Of a stretch of DNA of 64,000 nucleotides, positions 2,843 to 25,295 are shown piece after piece; positions within the stretch are counted from its first letter, which is position 1, and each line of letters opens with the position of its first letter. The stretch covers positions 6,572,001 through 6,636,000 of the forward strand of contig CDRNST010000436.1 in assembly GCA_977016875.1 (NCBI GenBank). The letters are read 5' to 3'. A program made the position numbers and the translations under genes. The stretch is from Pavona decussata. Taxonomy: Eukaryota. The notes under the pieces are model-generated. The model was not told where the DNA came from, did not search any database, and saw only the letters and a program-made list of their open reading frames with translations.

Positions 2843-5800
2843 TTATCATTATTTTATGTAAGAACACTAAAATATAATAATATATTAATTATTTTATTAA
2901 TTAAAGTTCTTACATGTATGTTATCCATGGTTTCATGTCAGTGTCCTCATGAGGGCTGTCAATGGGCATTTACAACATCTTACAAATTGAAGAGGCACAT
3001 AAGAGGCCATACTGGAGAGAAGCCATTTCTAGTAAGTAGCAGTATAACAGAAAGGGGAAGGGGAAACCTCTTTGTACTTTTGCTGAAGCAAAACTCATCT
3101 GTAGTTTTCACACATTGGATATTTGTGCGACTATTAAACAATAACAATAATTTTTTTTTTAATTTTTCCTCCATTTCTCCATTAGATAATAATAATTACA
3201 ACAATTATATTTCTCTATTATATAATAATTACATTATAATATTACTGATAATAATTTGACAGTGCCCTCAGGAAGGATGTGGCAAGTGTTTTACCACTGC
3301 TTACAACTTGAAATCGCACATCAAAGCCCACTTCAAGCCCGACACCCATATGTGCAGGTATGAAGGTTGTGATAAGGCATTCCCCACTGCACACAAGTTG
3401 AAAGTTCATGAGAGAAGACACGAAACTGAAAATAAACTGTACAGATGTGAAATGGAAGGTTGTGACAAGGTGTTCTCTGCCCATGGAACTCTGAAAGCTC
3501 ACATGAAGACACACAGTGGACACAAACCCCACTTGTGTCCCGTTGTGGGATGTGAGAAGAGGTTTTCTAAAGCATCCAAGCTGAAGCTGCATCTAAGGTC
3601 TCATACAGGAGAGAGACCATATCATTGTGATGTTGAGGTACAGTGTTATCTATAGGCTTTCAGTCTCTGTTACATGCATCAGAAATCTCATCACTGGTAA
3701 AATGCTCTCCCAGAGAACCATGACTGTGTAAATTATATTTCATAATGAACATAATTATACTAATAATGTACCAGAGAGTATATTATCATCCTGAAATTAT
3801 AATGACATTTGAAACTATTCTAGAGTGAAAAGGAATATTGAGATTAACATCTGCAATGATGTGAATTGTGAATTCACCAAAAGAATGACCAGCTGCAGTT
3901 TTCATTGTAGCATTGGCTTCACAAAGACAGACATACATCCTCATAGTGTTTGTGTGGCACAGAAGGCCTGAACGACAGTTGCTACAACTTTGTTCACAGT
4001 GAACCTAAAATACAATAAACCTTAGCAAAAGTATAAATAAACACTAAAATACATTTAACATTTGTGTCCAAATGTTAACTTTTTTTACGATAGTACACTT
4101 GTACTAAACAGTGGCGCCTTTCTCCAGCGACGAAATCTTAACTTTTGTTTTAAACAAGCAGAACAGCAGATGATGGTTAATGGTACCAGTAATAACTGCA
4201 TGATCAGTTCTTGGAATCAGTGTTTTTAAATCTCCTTTGATTGGTGATTGGGCATCAGTTGTCTCTGCTTGGTTTCTCCTTAGGGTTGCGGCTGGTCATT
4301 TACAAGTTCATACAAACTTAGACGACACATGCGAAAACACACTGGTGAAAGGCCGTTTATCTGCAGTTATGATGGCTGTTGTAAATCTTTCACAAGATCA
4401 AGTCATTTGAAGACCCATATACTTGGTCATACCGGAGAAAAACCTTATGTGTGCCCAGTTGATGGTAAGGTTGTCTTAGGTTTGTTCTTTCAACATCTTG
4501 TCCCCATCACTCTGCTGACAAGCAGGTTTTCTGGTTAAAGGAAGTCATGAGACCTTTAGCTAGTGAACATGTGTAATGTAACTGTCTGCCTCAAGAAATT
4601 GCCAGTATCCTGAAGGCCAGAGGGAAGGTGCTGCTGAAGCCTTATTGTACGTTACAAAATGATACAACATCTGAATAATATTACATCAAAAGTTAGAAGT
4701 GCTATAATACTTGCTTTTCTTATATCTGTGTCACCAACATACAAAGGTTTGTATCTGCAGTCAAAGACTTCTATGCAGTGCCCACCTTGAACAGAAGTTA
4801 CAGGCAGTTGAAGGCAGTTGGAGGTTTAACAAAACCTATTTGACAGAATGAATCTGTTGTAATGACAAGAATTGTGGCTGATGACTTTTAGAAGAGGCTC
4901 TGACCTTATTCTAGACTTGCTGGCCTTAAAAGGTCTGCTATTTCGTTATTTTGAGAAGTCCTATACACTTTCTTTAAGGTTGTGACAAGGCATTCACTGC
5001 TGGGAGTAGTCTTAATGTACACATTTGTAAACACACTGGGGAAAAGCCATTCAAGTGTGACATTGATGGCTGTACCAAGAACTATACAACAGCTGCAAAC
5101 CTTAGGGCTCACCAGAAACGACATGGAATTAAGGCTGTAGTTGGTAAGATTCATTATTATCAGTTAGAAAATAGGGTGGAGATGGTAACATAATGTAATA
5201 ACAATTTTATTTATTTAGCCTAAAATAAATTACATACCGGTAGATTTATTATTTAATTTTTTTTGCCATACTTTAGAATACAAAATAATGGTGAGGAAAC
5301 CTAAAAGAAACCACAAGCCTTATTAACACTTACTTGTAGCTTCCCCTGCAAATTACAAGATTGAATTGATGGACAAACAAGATCTAGAACATAAATTATT
5401 GATTAATCTTAGCCTTAGGATTGCCAGTTCATTACCTTTTGGAGTTCATTCCTTGGTCAAAACAGCTCCGATAAACTCAAAAACAGATTACAGATTTTGT
5501 ACAATAAAAAATTGTATTTTATGTGAATGTGTCAACTTCAGATAATATTGATCATTTAGGACTTGCATATCTCGTGATCTGATTCTACATGACTGTACTT
5601 TCCCTGAACTCCTTGTTCACCTGTTTCTTTACTCTTGTTTTTTTCTTTCTGTTAGGTTTCATTGATGTCTATTACAAATCTTTGTTTTTATCTTGCAGTG
5701 GATTTCAGTGATTCACCCCATGGTGACATTACAACAGAACTTGGCACTGTGAGCTGTGGGAGCACTACTAGTGAAGCTGAACCAGAGGTCATGTACACCA

Positions 5801-7543
5801 CAATAGGGGCTTTCCATGCAGGTAATTTTAACTTGGAGGATGCTGCACGCCTTACTTCAGTTGGTGTTCATTTACCATCATCATCAACTACCCTGTGTGC
5901 CCTGGTGACCTCAACAGGGCATCCATTAGTGTCACCATCTACTGAACTTGTGTTGGATACAGAAAAGAAACAACCAGAGGATGGAGAAATCAAAACTACT
6001 TCATCAGAAAATCAAGTGCCAGTTTCGGTTCATCAAGAGCAGTTTGTTACAGGGTGCTTAGAAAACAATACAAAAATGGATGTTACAGAGTATGTTGTGA
6101 GATGTGCTGGTGATGAACAAGATACAATAATTACACAAAGTAACCAGGGAAGGGCGGATGTGGTTGGAGGAGCAGTTTTACAAGGAGGCAAGCTCGGTGG
6201 CAGCTTTGATTTATGCATTACCAGCATGATGAGTCATATAACAAGTGAAGAAGGCCAAGATGGTGCTGGACATTCTGTAACAAAAACTGTACAACCAAGC
6301 ATTACAGCATCAGGCTCTAGTAAGAGGTCAAGGACTCTTGACTTCAGAGATGTTCACCCTGAAGATCAGTTTGCTCCACCTGCTGTCATATTCCAGGTTT
6401 GCTGAATGACTCTTACATTCGGTTTTCTGCATCAGATGTAATTGAGTGAAGCTTCTTTCACTCTGTTTAGAGCTATTTACAAAAGAAGCAGTGATATTAT
6501 AAGTGTTTAAAGCCAGGATTTGAATATATGAAATATTTGTTAATGTGCTCGCAGTGGCCAAAATGGCACAGCCGGGCTTTTGAGTCGGCCACTGTCATGC
6601 TAGAAGGTACAGAATCCATGACATTAAATCAGGACTGTACTAAAATAGTTAATTTATTTTGTTTAAAAAAAAACCCTTACTTAATGTGCACCATGATTGG
6701 TGGACAGCTGTCATTAATATAACTTTATAGCTAAACAGAATTAAAATAATAATATTTTGTTATTATTATTGCTAGACACTATTTCTTCAGACAGCCTGTC
6801 CTAGGTAAGAAGACCAGGAATTCAAGAAAAGTACAGTCGAACCTCCTTATTACAGACCCCAAAGGGCAGGAATAAGTGTCCGTATTATAGAGGTGTCCAT
6901 TTTAGAGAAGTAGGCTTTATATGGATTTCGGTCTCTCAGGGACCAAGTGAACTGTCCGTATTATAGAGGTGTCCATAAGGAGAGTTTCCACTGTATTACC
7001 ATCCCCTATTCTCTGTAGTAATGCTTTAGAATTTTGTAATCTCTGCATGCAACTCGCAGCGTAACTAATATCCCCATTGTTTAATTAGTTACAATACTTA
7101 GGACAATAATCTGTTGATGCTAAGTTTCTGAGGATGCAGTTTGTTGTTTTCAGGATGAAATCAAATCCTCAGATACTGAAAATGAAGCTGAAGTCGTAGT
7201 AAGTCATGTCCAACAATCCCCTGAGGGAATTTCTGTAGTGCAACTTCCCAAAGAAACAGTGCAGATCAAGTTACCCCAGGGATTAACTACTGAATCAGGA
7301 GTAACTATGGTTCATGCACCAGAAGTGGAACATATGGAGGTCGATGTAAGTGGGAACCATAATATCGCTACTGATAGTCCACTGGAACCCATTTCATCAC
7401 TGCCAGATGAGACCGAGGAAGGACGCGGTCTGGTCAAGACTGATCTATCACCATATATGGACAATCACAGCTCTTCAGAGCAAGATGAGAGCAATGGAGA
7501 TACTTATCCAGAAAGTACAATAAATTTGCAAGATCTGCGATGA
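164..7543 (+). CDS. ZXDC: ZXD-family (ZXDA/B/C-like) C2H2 zinc-finger transcription factor, 5' part outside window
   Basis: Exons read by hand with GT-AG sites in consistent phase: 164-190, 558-811, 1108-1335, 1872-2000, 2942-3031, 3263-3637, 4284-4464, 4979-5143, 5699-6396, 7154-7543 (TGA). They encode ten tandem CxxxxC..H..H fingers with TGEKP/TGERP linkers and a C-terminal STINLQDLR, as in ZXD proteins. Confidence 0.88.
259..416. mobile_element. Tc1/mariner-pogo-type MITE (CAGT termini, TA TSD)
   Basis: ta|CAGTGGAACCTC ... GAAGTTTGACTG|ta with internal GGACACC repeats; related to 6834-6993 and 26276-26878. Confidence 0.65.
2385..2445. repeat. (TAA)n microsatellite (others at ~2803-2842, 10690-10757, 21967-22000, 35550-35593, 36374-36422, 47580-47643)
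   Basis: Direct trinucleotide repeat visible in sequence. Confidence 0.95.
2472..2692. mobile_element. Inverted pair of Penelope-like element ends with minimal hammerhead-ribozyme motif
   Basis: Arms 2472-2564 and 2600-2692 are reverse complements (93 bp, 1 mismatch). Each carries TTTC-TTGATAA-T-GATGAC-aggat-GTCATC-GAAA(C/T)GTC-GAAA. The pair sits among (TAA)n tracts. Confidence 0.65.
6834..6993. mobile_element. Tc1/mariner-pogo-type MITE
   Basis: ta|CAGTCGAACCTCCTTA ... TAAGGAGAGTTTCCACTG|ta; internal GTCCGTATTATAGAGGTGTCCAT repeated twice. Confidence 0.7.
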
Positions 7544-8054
7544 TAATGATGATGTAGGAAAAGAACAGATGTAACAGATCCGTATACTAATTCAAGTATA
7601 ATTTGCTAATTTATATGGTATAGCAATGTGTAGTGTTTGGAGAGCGAGGACACATGTGACCTCCCCCGGCGACGAGGTTTAAGTATTCCCACTATTGCAA
7701 CAGAAGAACTCTGTTTCAACAGCCAATACGCCTCTGGTTGGCACATTAAATCAATCGATGTCGTAGTTAACGCGAAACATCGCTGTAACTTATCTTGTTA
7801 ATGTTTGCAATAATTTGACCCACACAAGGTAATCCAGAATCCAATCAATTATTTTAAGATTCGATAAGGGAGTCCAAGAAAACGTAGTACAATCGCAGTT
7901 TTTCAAGCGTAATAAATACCTTGGTTAATGTGTAACCTTTGGATTGACTTTCAGACAAGTGCCTGCATTCACCCTCAAAATGCGGACTCTGAAATCTGAA
8001 AAATAGAACCCAGGTTGTTACTTAGTTTTTCTGTTTTCTACAATGGCGAAAATG

Positions 8055-19994: not shown

Positions 19995-20540
19995 AGTTTC
20001 AAGTTTCAAGTTTCAAGTTCAGTTACTCAAAAATGTTAACATAAAAATTCAAGGACAACACTAACCCGCAAGTAGCTAGAGCTAATCTAGGCGGGTAGTG
20101 CCGAGAAGATTAATTTACAAGAATTAATTACAGTTTAAAGAGATTTATATACAATTTGTCAGTGAGCCATACAAACATTGAAAAACAGAAAGAAAAGAAA
20201 ATAAGTGAACATATGAAGAAAAGAGATATAAATTGCTATACTCTAAATAGATTGATTTAGTTACGATCATGTTGAAACTTTCAGTTTTGAAAACTCAGAT
20301 ATAAGAGTAGGAATGCCAACATAATCAATATGGAATAACAGGTCTTGCATTTTCCTCTTAAAGCTGTGCTTGGGTAATTTTCGAAGTTCTAAGGGAATAC
20401 TGTTCCACATTTTAGCCCCAAGTCGAGAAAAAGATTTAGATTGTTGGTTTAGTCTCGAATATTTAATGTGGTAGTTACCAGTTGAGGAGAATCTCGTATG
20501 ATAATTTGGTCTCTCTTGAAAAGTAAAAGTATCAGAGTAT
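19995..20540 (-). mobile_element. L2-type LINE 3' end with (CTTGAAA)n tail
   Basis: Minus strand encodes HTRFSSTGNYHIKYSRLNQQSKSFSRLGAKMWNSIP..LRKLPK.SFK; CTAGATTAGC stem region and tandem tail. The same tail occurs on + at ~39170-39245 and ~42170-42270. Confidence 0.7.
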
Positions 20541-20872: not shown

Positions 20873-21966
20873 TTTCCGACCTTCCTGGTGGGCGGCACCG
20901 ACACAGCGGCAAAACGCAATGCGCATGTGCCAACCACTGAACTTCCGGTCGGTGTTGTATTTCCGGTTAGCTATTAAAACCTATTGCGTAAACAAAAAAC
21001 TCCCGTCGCGCGAAGTTTAAAAACAAAACTCAAGAGTTACGAAACAAACTTAAGCAAAAAAGTTGTTTTCCTGGTGAGTAAATTTATTTTGCTGTTTTCA
21101 AACCTTTGCACCAAGGGGTTTGGTGCTTGCACCAAGTGCGAAAACCATGCTCGAAGATGCGACTTTCTCGCGCTTGTGAAGAAAAGTTTTGTTGTCCGTG
21201 GTTGTTGTTGTCCTGTTGTTAAAATGTTGTTCCTCGCAAGACGAGAAGTGTGGTAAAAGTTTAGATAAACGAAAATGCGGAGGCCGTCATTACTTCTTGA
21301 CACCTCAGTTAGCCAGGGCCGCTGAACTTCCAGTTGGTTCGATAGTTTGCCGGGTTCACTGGGACGAAACAACCGGTGTTCGGTTACTCAGGAAAACTAC
21401 TCTCGAGCTCTCCACAAAAACGGGATACCTTCTCGACTTTATGCCGTGCTGGACGCTGTTGGAAAGGCAGGTAATGTTCCTTATCGTCCGGGAACAAGGT
21501 GCTGCAACAAATGTGCTGAGAATGTCGACCAAGAAGAAAAGTTTACCACGTATGCAGAATATAAGCCGAAAGAGGCCCAATTTCGGTTCTGGGTTGTGCA
21601 TAATTTTCCAGTGGATGTGCAGCAGGTGTGCTTGCAAGAACCACCGTGATAAAATAAAAGTACCGGATCCTGTAGTAAAGGAGCAATAAATTGCACTACA
21701 AATAATATAAAGAGCAAGGCTAATTTCACAGTCAGAGAAATATATTTTTCCTTTCCAATATTTCAAACGGCACGGCCTTTCTTCATCAAACATACCCTGC
21801 CTTGCTCTTTATATTATTTGTTCCATAATTTTTAAGTTTGCCTTTTACTTTCACATACAAAGATAACTTCATGATTATTAACGTTGCTAAGTTTGCAACC
21901 CCAAATAGTAACCCTTAATAAAGTAAACGCATTTTTCCCCAATTATTGTATATATTTAGCAAAAGA

Positions 21967-22003
<37 letters not shown>

Positions 22004-24216
22004 GAGATTGTAGAATAGTGCTTCCAAATCAGGACACCTGGAGTACAATACAAACTTCTTTTGGAGTTGTGAAAGTCAAATTGTCATGGAGATGTCCTAG
22101 TAGAAAGACATGTATAGAACAGCATTGAAACTGTTTTCAAAGCCTCATCAGGTCAGTTTAACTACACAACTACTTGAACAAAAAAGAAAAAAAAGAATCC
22201 CAGTAATATAATAGAGATATTTCAGTAACAGTATTTCTACCAAACATCCTTCTGAAGGATTACACTGATCATCAACATGTATATTTCACTATAAAAATAA
22301 GCAATATCAATATTGTAATTTTTTTTTTTCATCTGCTAGAGGAGAACAAATGTAACTTATACAAAGGCACCCCCAACCCCAGAGGGAATGAAATTAAGCC
22401 CCAGTATGAATATGCATATTCTGATCACAATTTAAATATGTGGATAATATAATTATCCTCCACATATTTCTTATGTTACTAGTTGTGAGAGTTTATTTAA
22501 ACATCTTGATGGAGTATGTGGTGACCATTAGTTTCTACTTATAAAGATAAAAAGTTCTGCATCCCTTCTTCGTTATTTTTTTCCAAACATTCATTTGATT
22601 ACCTGGTAGAGAGATTCCAGAGAGCATTGCACCAACACCATGAAGGCAACATTGCACTTGCACTGTACACACCCTCAGAGATGGAAAAGTTTGCAGAGAA
22701 AAATGCACCTGGTCTTTTTAATCTTATTCTACACTATAATTGGATTCTTGGATCATAATCAAAATATTATTTTGCGAGATGATCCAAGAATGTGTGATGA
22801 GCATCGTGTATTACAAGAAAAGAGAACAGTTGATTTATTGCATATCATAGCATATTTCTGGTAATCTTGATTTACACAATACTTTCTTTTAAGCTGACTT
22901 GACTTGTCTCAGGTATATTTATTTTCCTTGCCTAATGCATATGAGGAACACTCCTAAGTTGGAATAAACATGTTTATCAACCATAACAGCAGAAAAATCT
23001 AGAATCTACCTATACTAAGATTGCACATTTGATTCTTCTTTCACCATGAGGTTTCCACATACAGAATATACTACTATCATATGAAACCCCTGAAATGAAA
23101 TAAACAAGAAAAATTTAATTATTTTCTTACATTTTTACTTACAGTGTATATAAAAAGGGGGCTACAAATAATATTTATTATTATTATTTCAGGTCACAGA
23201 AGACACATTTAATGCATGAGGAAGAAGGATTATTTATTCAGCAACATGGGGCATCCAGAGATGTGATAAATTCTGCCAGAAGTTTAGGCTTCAGCACCAA
23301 TCCAATCTTTTTCTTAGTTATCATTTTTTACCTTGGGCAAATTTAGGCTTTTGCACAAATTATGCTAGCATTTTTTCGATCATTTTGGTGAAGTAAAAGC
23401 ACCAACCATTATTCGAGCATTTCAGTGGCATTTTCCATTTTTTGAGAGAGAGAAAGAGAAAAATTAAAATAAAATGACAAATCATTTTAAATGAAACGTC
23501 AAGTAGCCTGCTTGGGTCAAAACTTGGCGTCGCGAACAGAAGCAGACGCTTTTCACCAACTTATTTCGCAACAAGAACTTTTTTCAGCCATACTTGCACG
23601 CATGTTTTAACATTAGCTTCAGGTTAAATGCTTTGGTGACCATAATTTTCAAAGTTTGAAGTCATTCATTTACCAGACAAGATGACTGAGTGAAAGGCTT
23701 TGCGTCGTTGCTTATAATAACATTTGAAACAGATAGACCTTGCGTCTTCCTTTGGTCTAATTAATAAAAAAATATATAAATGAGAATTTGTAACAGCAGT
23801 CTTTCCAAGAACATTCCATGTGTTGAAGAACGGACAAATTGCAATAGTAGCTATAGAGCTAGGTGTTAAAACACGATTCACCAACCGACAAAATATTCAT
23901 AACTTGGGCTGAAATGGCGGGCGAACACGCATAGAATCACATTTTTGGACGTTTTTTAAAAGATAATCAGTACCACTCGACTTCAGAATCAATCATTGTA
24001 AGAAATTATGGTGAGCTTACCTTTTCTTTATCATTGGTCCACTTCATCTTTAACATTTGGTTAATGATCCACAGCAGGAAAGTTTTCAAAAAACTTCAAC
24101 AGATCAAAACATAACCCTAACCGGAAAGCGTGATCTCGACCGGAAATGCCAAAAATTGGCGCATGCGTAGACGTTTTGCCGCTGTGTTGGCGGCACCCAA
24201 CGTGCGAATGCGGAAA
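20873..24216 (+). mobile_element. Internally deleted DNA transposon bounded by ~100 bp imperfect inverted repeats, carrying a decayed DUF6589/Academ-like gene
   Basis: Left 20873-20970 versus reverse complement of 24117-24216 share TTTCCG, TGGG, ACACAGCGGCAAAACG, CGCATG.GCCAA, TTCCGGTCG and TTTCCGGTTAG in the same order and similar spacing. Spliced coding relics lie inside. Confidence 0.65.
21147..23300 (+). pseudogene. Decayed intron-containing transposase-like gene (Cys-rich N-terminus plus DUF6589-associated helical region)
   Basis: 21147-~21590: MLEDATFSRL*RKVLLSVVVVVLLLKCC..ELPVGSIVCRVHWDE [frameshift] NNRCS..IPSRLYAVLD..RPGTRCCNKC. 22610-22860 spliced (TG|gt..ag|G) to 23193-23300: EKNAPGLFNLIL..RTVDLLHIIAYF/WSQKTHLMHEEEGLFIQQHGASRDVINSARSLGFST. 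The family call is from motif memory, not a search. Confidence 0.55.
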
Positions 24217-24286
24217 ACCTTGTTCCCAGGATCCTCTGTTTTCCTCCTTCGAGAATGGAAGAGCGATGACCCTGGGAACAAGGTTG
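24215..24286. mobile_element. Short hairpin mini-element (AACCTTGTTCCCAGG...CCTGGGAACAAGGTT)
   Basis: Perfect 15 bp inverted repeat. The 9 bp flanks GAATGCGGA / GAATAAGGC match at 6 of 9 positions. Confidence 0.75.
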
Positions 24287-24427: not shown

Positions 24428-25295
24428 ATGTCCTGGCAAGCTTATGTAGATACCAACTTGTTGGGGACGGGAAAAGTTCAGAAGGCCGCCATATTTGGAT
24501 TAGATGGTTCACAATGGGCAACTAGCGCTGGATTTACGGTAAGATTCGTGTTAGACTGAGTTTTTTGAAAAAAATTACTGAACCTATGTTGCTCGTTATA
24601 AGGTTAATCTTATATTACATCGCCCAGAATCTTTCGCGACATTTACTTACAGTACCATAATCTGATAGACGCGGTATTGGTTGGCAACCGTTGGGACTAC
24701 CCGATTCTTTTGTGTGCGACAACTTTATGCAAGTTTCGATCCGAAATTAGCAAACTTTAACAAAAATTGCGACTAGTTCTACTAGTGGACTACTGAGAAA
24801 CAAAAGTAGGTCGCTCGTAAATTCGCAAAACGTATGCGCTGTTGGCCACTTTTGGATCATTTTCCGGCTCTATTGCCTGTGTGCTGGCCTGATTAAGTTT
24901 TCAATTGTAGTTCCTGTGGACAACTTATAAAAGTCCCAAATGCGTCACAACATTCTGGGCGATGAATATTGTGCCCAGATATCAATTCAGCAATATTACA
25001 GCTAGATTTGATCTGGTGATAGGTATCCAAGCAAGAAGCAGTGGAGGTCATAAAGAGTTTGAAAGATGGAAGTGTCGCAGGCAAGACCATTTCGGGAACC
25101 AAATACATGATGCTGCGAAACGACCCGGAAAAGAAAGCGGCCTACTTGAAAATGAAAGAGAAGGGTGGTTTTTGTGCCATTCTTACCAATAAGGCCCTTA
25201 TTTTGGGCGGCTACGACGAAAGTGCTGGTGGAGCTGGAAATTGCAACCAAGTTGTGGAAAGTTTAGCAGAATATCTCGTCGGCACAGGGTTTTAA
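24428..25295 (+). CDS. Profilin
   Basis: Exons 24428-24538 and 25023-25295: MSWQAYVDTNLLGTGKVQKAAIFGLDGSQWATSAGFT/VSKQEA...GTKYMMLR...NCNQVVESLAEYLVGTGF*, a classic profilin N- and C-terminus. Confidence 0.95.

Follow-up and report, generated by a model that had tools for sequence, protein, structure and literature searches.

A 3.3-kb non-autonomous element of the coral Pavona decussata and its 8.3-kb relatives coding for a predicted DDE transposase with RING finger and deubiquitinase domains

Two Academ lineages of DNA transposons are distinguished in the passage of PMC10045372 that cites Kojima (2020): AcademH, with a helicase and target-site duplications (TSDs) of 9–10 bp, and AcademX, with an XPG domain and TSDs of 3–4 bp. 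As of 2017 no Pfam model existed for Academ cores, whose abundance was highest in rust fungi (PMC5751038). Viral-tegument-like deubiquitinases (VTDs) are defined by the signature of a Cys and an Asp-x-His motif; they were found mainly in Helentrons, and cnidarian VTDs fused to transposon-associated domains were mentioned (PMC9741609). The locus described here lies in a 64,000-nt stretch of Pavona decussata (GenBank assembly GCA_977016875.1, contig CDRNST010000436.1, positions 6,572,001–6,636,000 of the forward strand), the whole of which is called the window below. Window positions 20900–24188 were identified, by printing of the junctions and BLAST of genome copies, as one 3,289-bp copy of a repeat family. 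This copy is read, with a probability of about 0.9, as a non-autonomous internal-deletion derivative of an 8.3-kb cut-and-paste (DDE) DNA transposon. An initial annotation, made from the letters of the window, had proposed a deletion derivative of a poorly described coral DNA-transposon family with DUF6589/Academ-like coding relics; the first part of this proposal is borne out by longer copies and a shared deletion junction, and the second is weighed below.

The element starts with GACACAG and ends with CTGTGTT (Table 1); the limits of 20873–24216 given at first were too wide, as judged from genome copies and contig break-offs. Twelve fetched copies were aligned from 20899/20900 to 24187–24189, and the left end gave 20 matches elsewhere in the same 602-Mb genome, every one starting at 20899/20900. 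Contigs of public runs diverge into unrelated sequence at both element ends, as expected for other insertion sites. A 9-bp direct duplication of its own was found in 10 of the 11 copies examined, the sequence differing at every locus. Failure of the two termini to pair up elsewhere had been named in advance as fatal to the transposon reading; they do pair up, each pair with its own TSD. Repeat search of the window gave arms at 20889–20916 and 24172–24199 (28 nt, 86% complementary), which exceed the 17-nt terminal inverted repeat (TIR) because the duplicated target is included; the two 17-nt TIRs differ by one mismatch at the tip. Of the 16-mer ACACAGCGGCAAAACG the window holds exactly two copies, one per strand; two matches were attained by 3 of 100 shuffles when up to 3 mismatches were allowed. 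Beyond the left TIR, imperfect similarity with CGCATG and TTCCGG extends up to about 20985, and alignment of the left arm with the reverse-complemented right arm showed blocks kept over about 85–100 nt (the 16-mer, CGCATG.GCCAA and TTCCGG motifs); the inverted termini with shared CGCATG and TTCCGG blocks seen by the initial annotation are accordingly real. TIRs together with a TSD of fixed length that is specific to each site are the marks of a derivative of a TIR (cut-and-paste) DNA transposon, and integration would proceed by staggered cuts 9 bp apart.

Table 1. Features of the 3.3-kb element, in positions of the window.
Feature	Position	Strand	Remarks
Whole element	20900..24188	+	BLAST limits of 12 genome copies; loose contig ends at 20897–20900 and 24187–24190
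Left TSD copy, 9 bp, GGCGGCACC	20891..20899	.	Same 9 nt after the right end
Right TSD copy, 9 bp, GGCGGCACC	24189..24197	.	Junction printing
Left TIR, 17-nt core	20900..20916	+	16 nt perfectly complementary to the right end
Right TIR	24172..24188	-	Repeat finding and junction printing
Subterminal region, putative 5' untranslated exon	20917..21073	+	CTG/GTGAGT, donor GT at 21074–21075
First coding exon relic: ATG 21147, TGA 21177–21179, hydrophobic run 21186–21221, Zn-binding domain	21147..21585	+	3' end (21585) approximate
Exon relic, first half of the helical pre-core region	22580..22860	+	Donor GT 22861–22862; 5' end (22580) provisional
Exon relic SQKTHL...GFST, truncated by the internal deletion	23193..23305	+	Acceptor AG 23191–23192; homology to L010 3581–3696
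Deletion junction	23305..23307	.	Lost: remainder of the pre-core exon, DDE core, RING finger, VTD deubiquitinase
Right subterminal region as minus-strand first exon (tentative)	24021..24188	-	Donor 24021/24020, two joints in run X2

Most copies of the family are about 3.3 kb long and 94–98% identical to the window copy along the whole length. Two long copies, L009 (C25; 8,332 bp) and L010 (C95:151460-159801; 8,342 bp), agree with the 3.3-kb form in the 30 nt at either end, and each has its own 9-bp TSD. The window lacks 4,236 bp (L010 3697–7932), exactly at the 23305/23307 junction; the catalytic core, reported missing from the outset, is indeed absent from the window and present in the two longer copies. 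A 221-nt probe spanning the junction gave full-length matches at no fewer than 17 places of the genome (92–100% identity) and was split in two halves only in L009 and L010. The common junction, split only in the long copies, points therefore to one deletion event that gave a master copy, later spread by transposition. The window copy retains its two termini, the 5' part and coding exons one to three; everything from the middle of the pre-core exon up to the far side of the deletion is lost, and with this loss, a stop codon and frameshifts the copy cannot make a transposase. It shares its termini with longer, transposase-encoding copies and is itself without transposase, that is, non-autonomous; the transposase of the full-length copies would recognise the shared termini and move the 3.3-kb copy in trans.

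This arrangement resembles that of Ds of Ac and of KP and other deleted P elements, in which the termini and 5' coding exons are kept and the catalytic part is deleted. By analogy with them, the derivative would have been amplified in trans beyond its autonomous parent (here at least 17 places versus 2). It differs from Ds and KP in that the 3.3-kb subfamily is 8–24% diverged from the present full-length copies internally, over most of its length, whereas the extreme termini are identical. The family appears to have been active recently, judging from junction copies that are up to 100% identical and from the two full-length copies with an intact core exon (368 codons, reported as 100% identical between L009 and L010). 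Another explanation would derive the peptides from a single-copy gene of the host that was domesticated. Relatives are indeed annotated as "uncharacterized protein" in Nematostella, Ptychodera, Lingula and Branchiostoma; the family is multi-copy, however (81 matches of the core exon in its own genome), its copies are bounded by TIRs and TSDs, and the window copy is broken by the stop, the frameshifts and the 4.2-kb deletion. At the window locus the host-gene explanation is refuted by these copies, ends and lesions, and as an account of the family it is highly improbable; some distant relatives may be domesticated.

The coding relics of the window copy were compared with the long copies exon by exon. 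The relic of the first coding exon matched the L010 exon with 93% and 85% identity in two frames (tblastn), the Cys/His positions of the N-terminal domain are conserved in the family alignment, and ATG and TGA lie where they had been placed before (Table 1). Codon 11 is TGA in the window and AGA in L009 and L010, i.e., an A>T change; the splice-spanning codon is TGG in the window and CGG (R) in the long copies, a CpG-type C>T change. Of the CpG-type lesions proposed initially, the W codon therefore stands and the TGA does not. A 13-bp deletion at 21367/21368 shifts the frame (nucleotide alignment), and about 32 extra nt at 22736–22767 break it; the joint 22735>22768 was seen in another copy. 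Other 3.3-kb copies have the same stop, frameshift and W codon, which were accordingly inherited from the master copy and are not the outcome of local decay. The exon relic of the helical region is covered by open reading frames (ORFs) at 22627–22758 and 22640–22864, with homology to L010 2788–3237 and to the proteins P0080 and P0058. Joining of the exon that ends at 22860 (TTC TG/GT) to that beginning at 23193 gives F-W-S-Q-K through canonical GT/AG sites; the Nematostella proteins P0080 and P0058 read ...AYFRSQK... across this join, which supports it and agrees with the F-R-SQK that had been expected. Taken alone, the window copy is an ordinary dead transposon.

In L010 the ORFs are found on the plus strand in the following order: 722–1282 (N-terminal exon); about 3090–3237 and 3603–3839 (helical region); 4054–4476 (holding LLDDFHN); 4702–5808 (368 codons, with PGDWP and EKKVEIWHS); 6318–7598 (426 codons, with a RING-like C-x-H...C-x2-C followed by GSNAC...D-S-H). 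All searches and folds were made with single exons, database proteins or intronless relatives, and never with joined exons. The autonomous element would carry one multi-exon gene of about 1,250 codons, whose predicted product comprises, in order, a short hydrophobic N-terminus, a Zn-binding domain (about 100 residues, presumed to bind the element ends), a helical pre-core region, the DDE core, a RING finger and a VTD. The RNase-H-like core would be split by a large all-helical insertion domain, its putative catalytic triad residing in the motifs DD-x-H, G-D-W-P and V-E-x-x-H-S, and the C-terminal VTD has the catalytic Cys and the Asp-x-His motif. Intronless relatives in the same genome have open frames of about 1,060–1,100 codons. 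One of them (L019:3292-6504, 1,071 residues) was modelled by AlphaFold from a 75-sequence alignment with a mean predicted local distance difference test score (pLDDT) of 85 and a predicted template modelling score (pTM) of 0.73. In the model D145/D146 are on the first long strand, D302 follows strand 297–301, and E536 is on helix 533–545, so that the predicted layout is the expected D, D, insertion domain, E; the modelled positions of the acidic residues (strand 1, after strand 4, following helix) are those of a DDE RNase-H-like core. A second family (L019/L020), to which this relative belongs, also has 9-bp TSDs and a similar 27-nt TIR that ends with GCGCATG.

The C-terminal ORF of L010 matched the RING finger and the VTD of L019 with E values of 6e-8 and 9e-8, respectively, and keeps GSNAC and D-S-H. 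The papain-like fold, the catalytic Cys and the Asp-x-His that characterize a VTD were found for full-length copies only; the window copy itself has lost its VTD. The cargo or fused domain suspected at first is accordingly present in the longer copies as the RING finger and the deubiquitinase. The combination of DDE transposase, RING and VTD is a concrete case of the fusion of VTDs with transposon domains mentioned in PMC9741609. Unlike the VTDs of Helentrons and herpesviruses, this one has a DDE transposase and a RING finger as its fusion partners in place of a RepHel protein; the domain combination is new and extends the link of VTDs to mobile elements from Helentrons to cut-and-paste transposons. 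The fusion of RING and VTD suggests that the element edits ubiquitin marks during transposition. In related coral assemblies, P0340, P0341, P0346 and P0348 were found to be deletion derivatives with the N-terminal Zn-domain exon fused directly to the start of the VTD, one such cluster holding 115 member sequences; there is therefore another non-autonomous form, which retains the deubiquitinase.

The hydrophobic, signal-peptide-like start noticed in the window copy proved to be a real oddity, conserved across at least five diverged coral families. Search with the first exon of L010 gave 54 relatives. Families that are 53–59% identical in the adjacent domain share the same start: Met, a short basic stretch, 12–16 strongly hydrophobic residues, a small-residue motif and the first Cys; the maxima of the run over Kyte–Doolittle 12-mers are 2.3–3.6. 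The same pattern was found in L024 and L025 (43% and 39% identical) and at L019:1792-2139, which is the first exon of a distant family, that of L019; in all three a stop precedes the Met by a few codons. The run is conserved in character, not in residues, in these five or more families, in which the Zn domain is 39–59% identical or has a different Cys pattern (L019), and in every family it directly follows the first Met of the open frame. The proteins of Ptychodera and Branchiostoma start at the Zn domain and are without the hydrophobic run. A reading of the run as the translated 3' polypyrimidine tract of an intron was rejected as the main explanation: the tract is G/T-rich, and five diverged families keep an open frame through Met, run and Zn domain, with a stop shortly before the Met.

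By AlphaFold the run is predicted as a separate helix of low confidence (pLDDT about 46–66); after it comes a domain of about 100 residues that is modelled with confidence (pLDDT 85–97) and for which no solved structural counterpart was found. In L024 and L025 the positive charges come after the run, so that a membrane anchor with the bulk of the protein toward the cytosol or nucleoplasm is conceivable; a cleaved signal would route a protein with RING, deubiquitinase and transposase parts to the wrong compartment. It may tentatively be suggested, as a rather doubtful extension, that the coral clade gained a signal-anchor giving a membrane-tethered (endoplasmic reticulum or nuclear envelope) DDE transposase with a RING E3 ligase and a deubiquitinase, and that the clade is a third Academ-like lineage or a new superfamily that manipulates host ubiquitin and is devoid of helicase and nuclease. 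The signal-anchor-like N-terminus of the coral proteins is in any case a directly testable oddity.

The family belongs to a wider clade. Word-index search with the 368-codon exon gave 85 relatives, none of them with a Pfam domain, and exhaustive search with P0080 gave 537 relatives at E ≤1e-3; those named are from Nematostella, Porites, Oscarella, Branchiostoma, Ptychodera and Lingula, the clade spanning cnidarians, a sponge, amphioxus, a hemichordate and a brachiopod. It is a metazoan-wide clade of DDE transposases that is not covered by Pfam and has a RING finger, a VTD and, in corals, a conserved signal-anchor-like start; its members appear publicly as uncharacterized proteins, and a profile of the clade would improve repeat and gene annotation of many marine invertebrate genomes. 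In the Nematostella protein P0058, residues 1–57 are a fragment of a RecQ-like helicase (SPLYSLINDQ), to which the pre-core region is fused; the gene model may be a chimera, or it may hint at a neighbouring helicase in that species.

As to superfamily, the most likely placement, held at about even odds, is a lineage without helicase and XPG that is related to the DUF6589/Academ transposases, the family of the window being probably a distant relative of DUF6589 outside the Pfam family proper. The DUF6589/Academ label of the initial annotation was a reasonable superfamily guess that is unproven: language-model features, the hhalign register and the 9-bp TSD speak for it; Pfam, the significance of hhalign and the lack of helicase and XPG speak against it. 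In the ESM Atlas, 28 of the 30 named matches of L019 residues 1–600 were DUF6589 (0.96–0.97; 217–220 of 256 features shared), and P0080 gave DUF6589 at 0.88. The best hhalign path, itself insignificant, paired a G-F-S helix and LLDDFH with a DUF6589 segment and DN-x-D, which is the resemblance that the initial annotation had pointed to. The order of motifs is the same as in PF20231, i.e., a helix-turn ending with G-x-S, the first Asp pair, G-D, then E followed by H and R, with DD-x-H here versus DN-x-D there and GDWP here versus GGDQ there. The 9-bp TSD, found in two families of the clade, is in the 9–10-bp range of AcademH.

The equation of DUF6589 with Academ is our own inference, made from helicase neighbours at eight loci, the definition of AcademH and the parallel of rust fungi, in which DUF6589 is now reported to be enriched. 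These eight, out of the DUF6589 loci fetched, are L014, L015, L016, L026, L029, L031, L032 and L033, where ORFs above the DUF6589 threshold adjoin a Helicase_C/RecQ-like ORF, as expected for AcademH; copies of such elements with DUF6589 and helicase lie, for instance, at C252:336271, C231:152459 and C208:74908. By language-model features, the AcademH-looking loci of its own genome are closest to the window family among named relatives. AcademH and the window family are alike in cut-and-paste transposition, TIRs, TSDs of 9–10 bp and animal hosts, and they are alike as well in a large transposase missed by classical Pfam transposase models; the 8.3-kb element differs in having neither helicase nor XPG, RING and VTD being fused to the transposase instead.

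A number of results weigh against this placement and against parts of the reading as a whole. No match at family level came out of Pfam scans that took in all exons of the window and L010, a 29-member alignment, six intronless relatives and two sets of homologues (seven, and ten long ones); the only hits were weak RING matches, one weak Herpes_teg_N and one weak DUF6589. The search for DUF6589 (PF20231), proposed at first as a check, remained below the threshold of 27 bits throughout; the best score (17.7 bits, E 0.0016) was that of a sponge protein, one of the 29 members, over the second-Asp region. The Pfam model works in this genome (at least 104 matches, none at loci of the window family). 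By hhalign, the family of the 368-codon exon compared with the C-terminal halves of DUF6589 gave a probability of 0.9%, and the full-length family compared with a 33-sequence DUF6589 alignment gave 0.24%; hmmsearch with the profile of the family against 13 DUF6589 ORFs of this genome gave none below E 0.1. The helicase partner gene that had been anticipated was not found: the helicase that AcademH would call for gave neither an ORF nor a tblastn match in L009, L010 or L019–L025. No member gave an XPG match in Pfam, and the TSD is 9 bp long, not the 3–4 bp of AcademX; with a 9-bp TSD and neither helicase nor XPG, the clade therefore fits neither described Academ lineage. The superfamily placement is weak for these reasons. 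Furthermore, copy L003, one of the 11 examined, has no TSD; the fold was obtained for a relative of the same genome that is about 30% identical and not for the spliced protein of the window family; transposase activity and mobilisation in trans are predictions; and sense splicing and the start codon are putative, the exon model being based on homology to predicted proteins only.

Two other placements have to be considered. A separate, unnamed superfamily of the hAT/P/Transib-like structural class, in which likeness to DUF6589/Academ would reflect ancient ancestry only, is possible and is rated below the DUF6589-related placement. It would account for the insignificant sequence and profile link to DUF6589, for the unique accessory set (RING and VTD, no helicase, no XPG) and for the best matches among solved structures, which are Hermes (hAT; PDB 6dww/4d1q) and the P element (PDB 6pe2/6p5a) with a root-mean-square deviation of 6–8 Å and 8–11% identity; the predominance of DUF6589 among the named ESM neighbours, the weak DUF6589 match of one member over the second-Asp region and a TSD length equal to that of AcademH tell against it. 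Membership in hAT proper is not indicated: TSDs are 8 bp in hAT and 9 bp here, the clade is without BED, THAP and hAT dimerisation domains (29 members, Pfam), and only the general fold is shared. Mutator elements typically make TSDs of 9 bp (9–11 bp) and often have extra zinc-finger or protease domains, some Mutator-like elements (MULEs) carrying PHD/RING-like fingers (Rehavkus) or captured cysteine proteases. Assignment of the family to the Mutator (MULE) superfamily would be in keeping with this cargo, with the 9-bp TSD in two families of the clade and with a DDE core that has an insertion domain; it is considered unlikely, as no MULE, Transposase_mut, FAR1/SWIM or related Pfam match was obtained for the exons and 29 members at E up to 1, and language-model features give DUF6589 for all of the nearest named families. 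The lineage related to DUF6589/Academ remains the preferred placement.

Transcription was considered from four public runs, examined as contigs of guessed kind, none of which is on record as RNA. In run X2 the 5' region of profilin is present at >1,000-fold word depth, and X2 is therefore probably RNA. No sense-strand splice joint was found in the four runs. The non-coding first exon up to 21073, proposed initially, has its GT in the sequence; contigs of the probable RNA runs read straight through 21073/21074, so that this exon is unconfirmed. In X2, two CT..AC joints, 23088>24020 and 23756>24021, correspond to minus-strand GT-AG introns (depth 3–7). The minus-strand donor, 168 nt inside the right end, mirrors the plus-strand donor, 174 nt inside the left end; tentatively, therefore, each arm may act as a promoter that faces inward and has a first exon. 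TTCCGG and GCGCATGCG-type motifs are present in both. The profilin gene occupies 24431–25295 (+) of the window, with exons MSWQAYVDTNL... and ...ISGTKYMMLRNDPEKK... and the start codon at 24431. The element lies about 240 bp upstream of this start codon and about 110 bp upstream of the onset of profilin coverage (near 24296), hence in the proximal promoter. With its recent activity and this position, the family may at present be giving rise to regulatory variation in the coral.

The same observations could be taken to mean that the termini represent a duplicated promoter module of the host (ETS-like TTCCGG, NRF1-like GCGCATGCG) giving convergent host transcripts beside profilin. Promoter-like motifs with an inward GT donor about 170 nt from the tip of both arms, minus-strand spliced joints that begin in the right arm, and the location of that arm, some 110 bp ahead of the 5' region of profilin with its high coverage, are in line with such a module. 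The entire 3.3-kb unit is, however, repeated with 92–100% identity at many unrelated loci, with sharp common limits and a different 9-bp duplication at each site, and arms that act as promoters would be compatible with transposon ends and are indeed to be expected in them. As a stand-alone explanation the promoter module is refuted by the repeated unit, the TSDs and the shared junction, and its probability is negligible beside that of the transposon derivative.

Several minor repeats were noted within and around the element. The intron of the element contains, at 21698–21821, a perfect inverted repeat of 23 nt whose arms are 78 nt apart; the depth at 21632–21682 is far higher, and many contigs exit the element at 21682, which suggests a separate small repeat, nested or shared, near 21632–21821. 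In the 3' non-coding part (23344–23420) about 75 nt match some 11 further loci of the genome with 82–86% identity and without the rest of the element; the segment may be shared with another small repeat. Directly after the element, upstream of profilin, a 29-nt inverted repeat (83% complementary, 12-nt loop) is found at 24216–24285. In the profilin gene region, 24825–24855 (+) holds a third, partial inner-TIR motif (GCAAAACG, TGCGC, TTTCCGG) without the terminal ACACAGCG and may be a fragment of a related element. Upstream of the element, an ORF at 20267–20410 (-) with ...WNSIPLELRKLPK... resembles the C-terminal tail of the reverse-transcriptase ORF of a long interspersed nuclear element (LINE) and is probably an old retrotransposon fragment.

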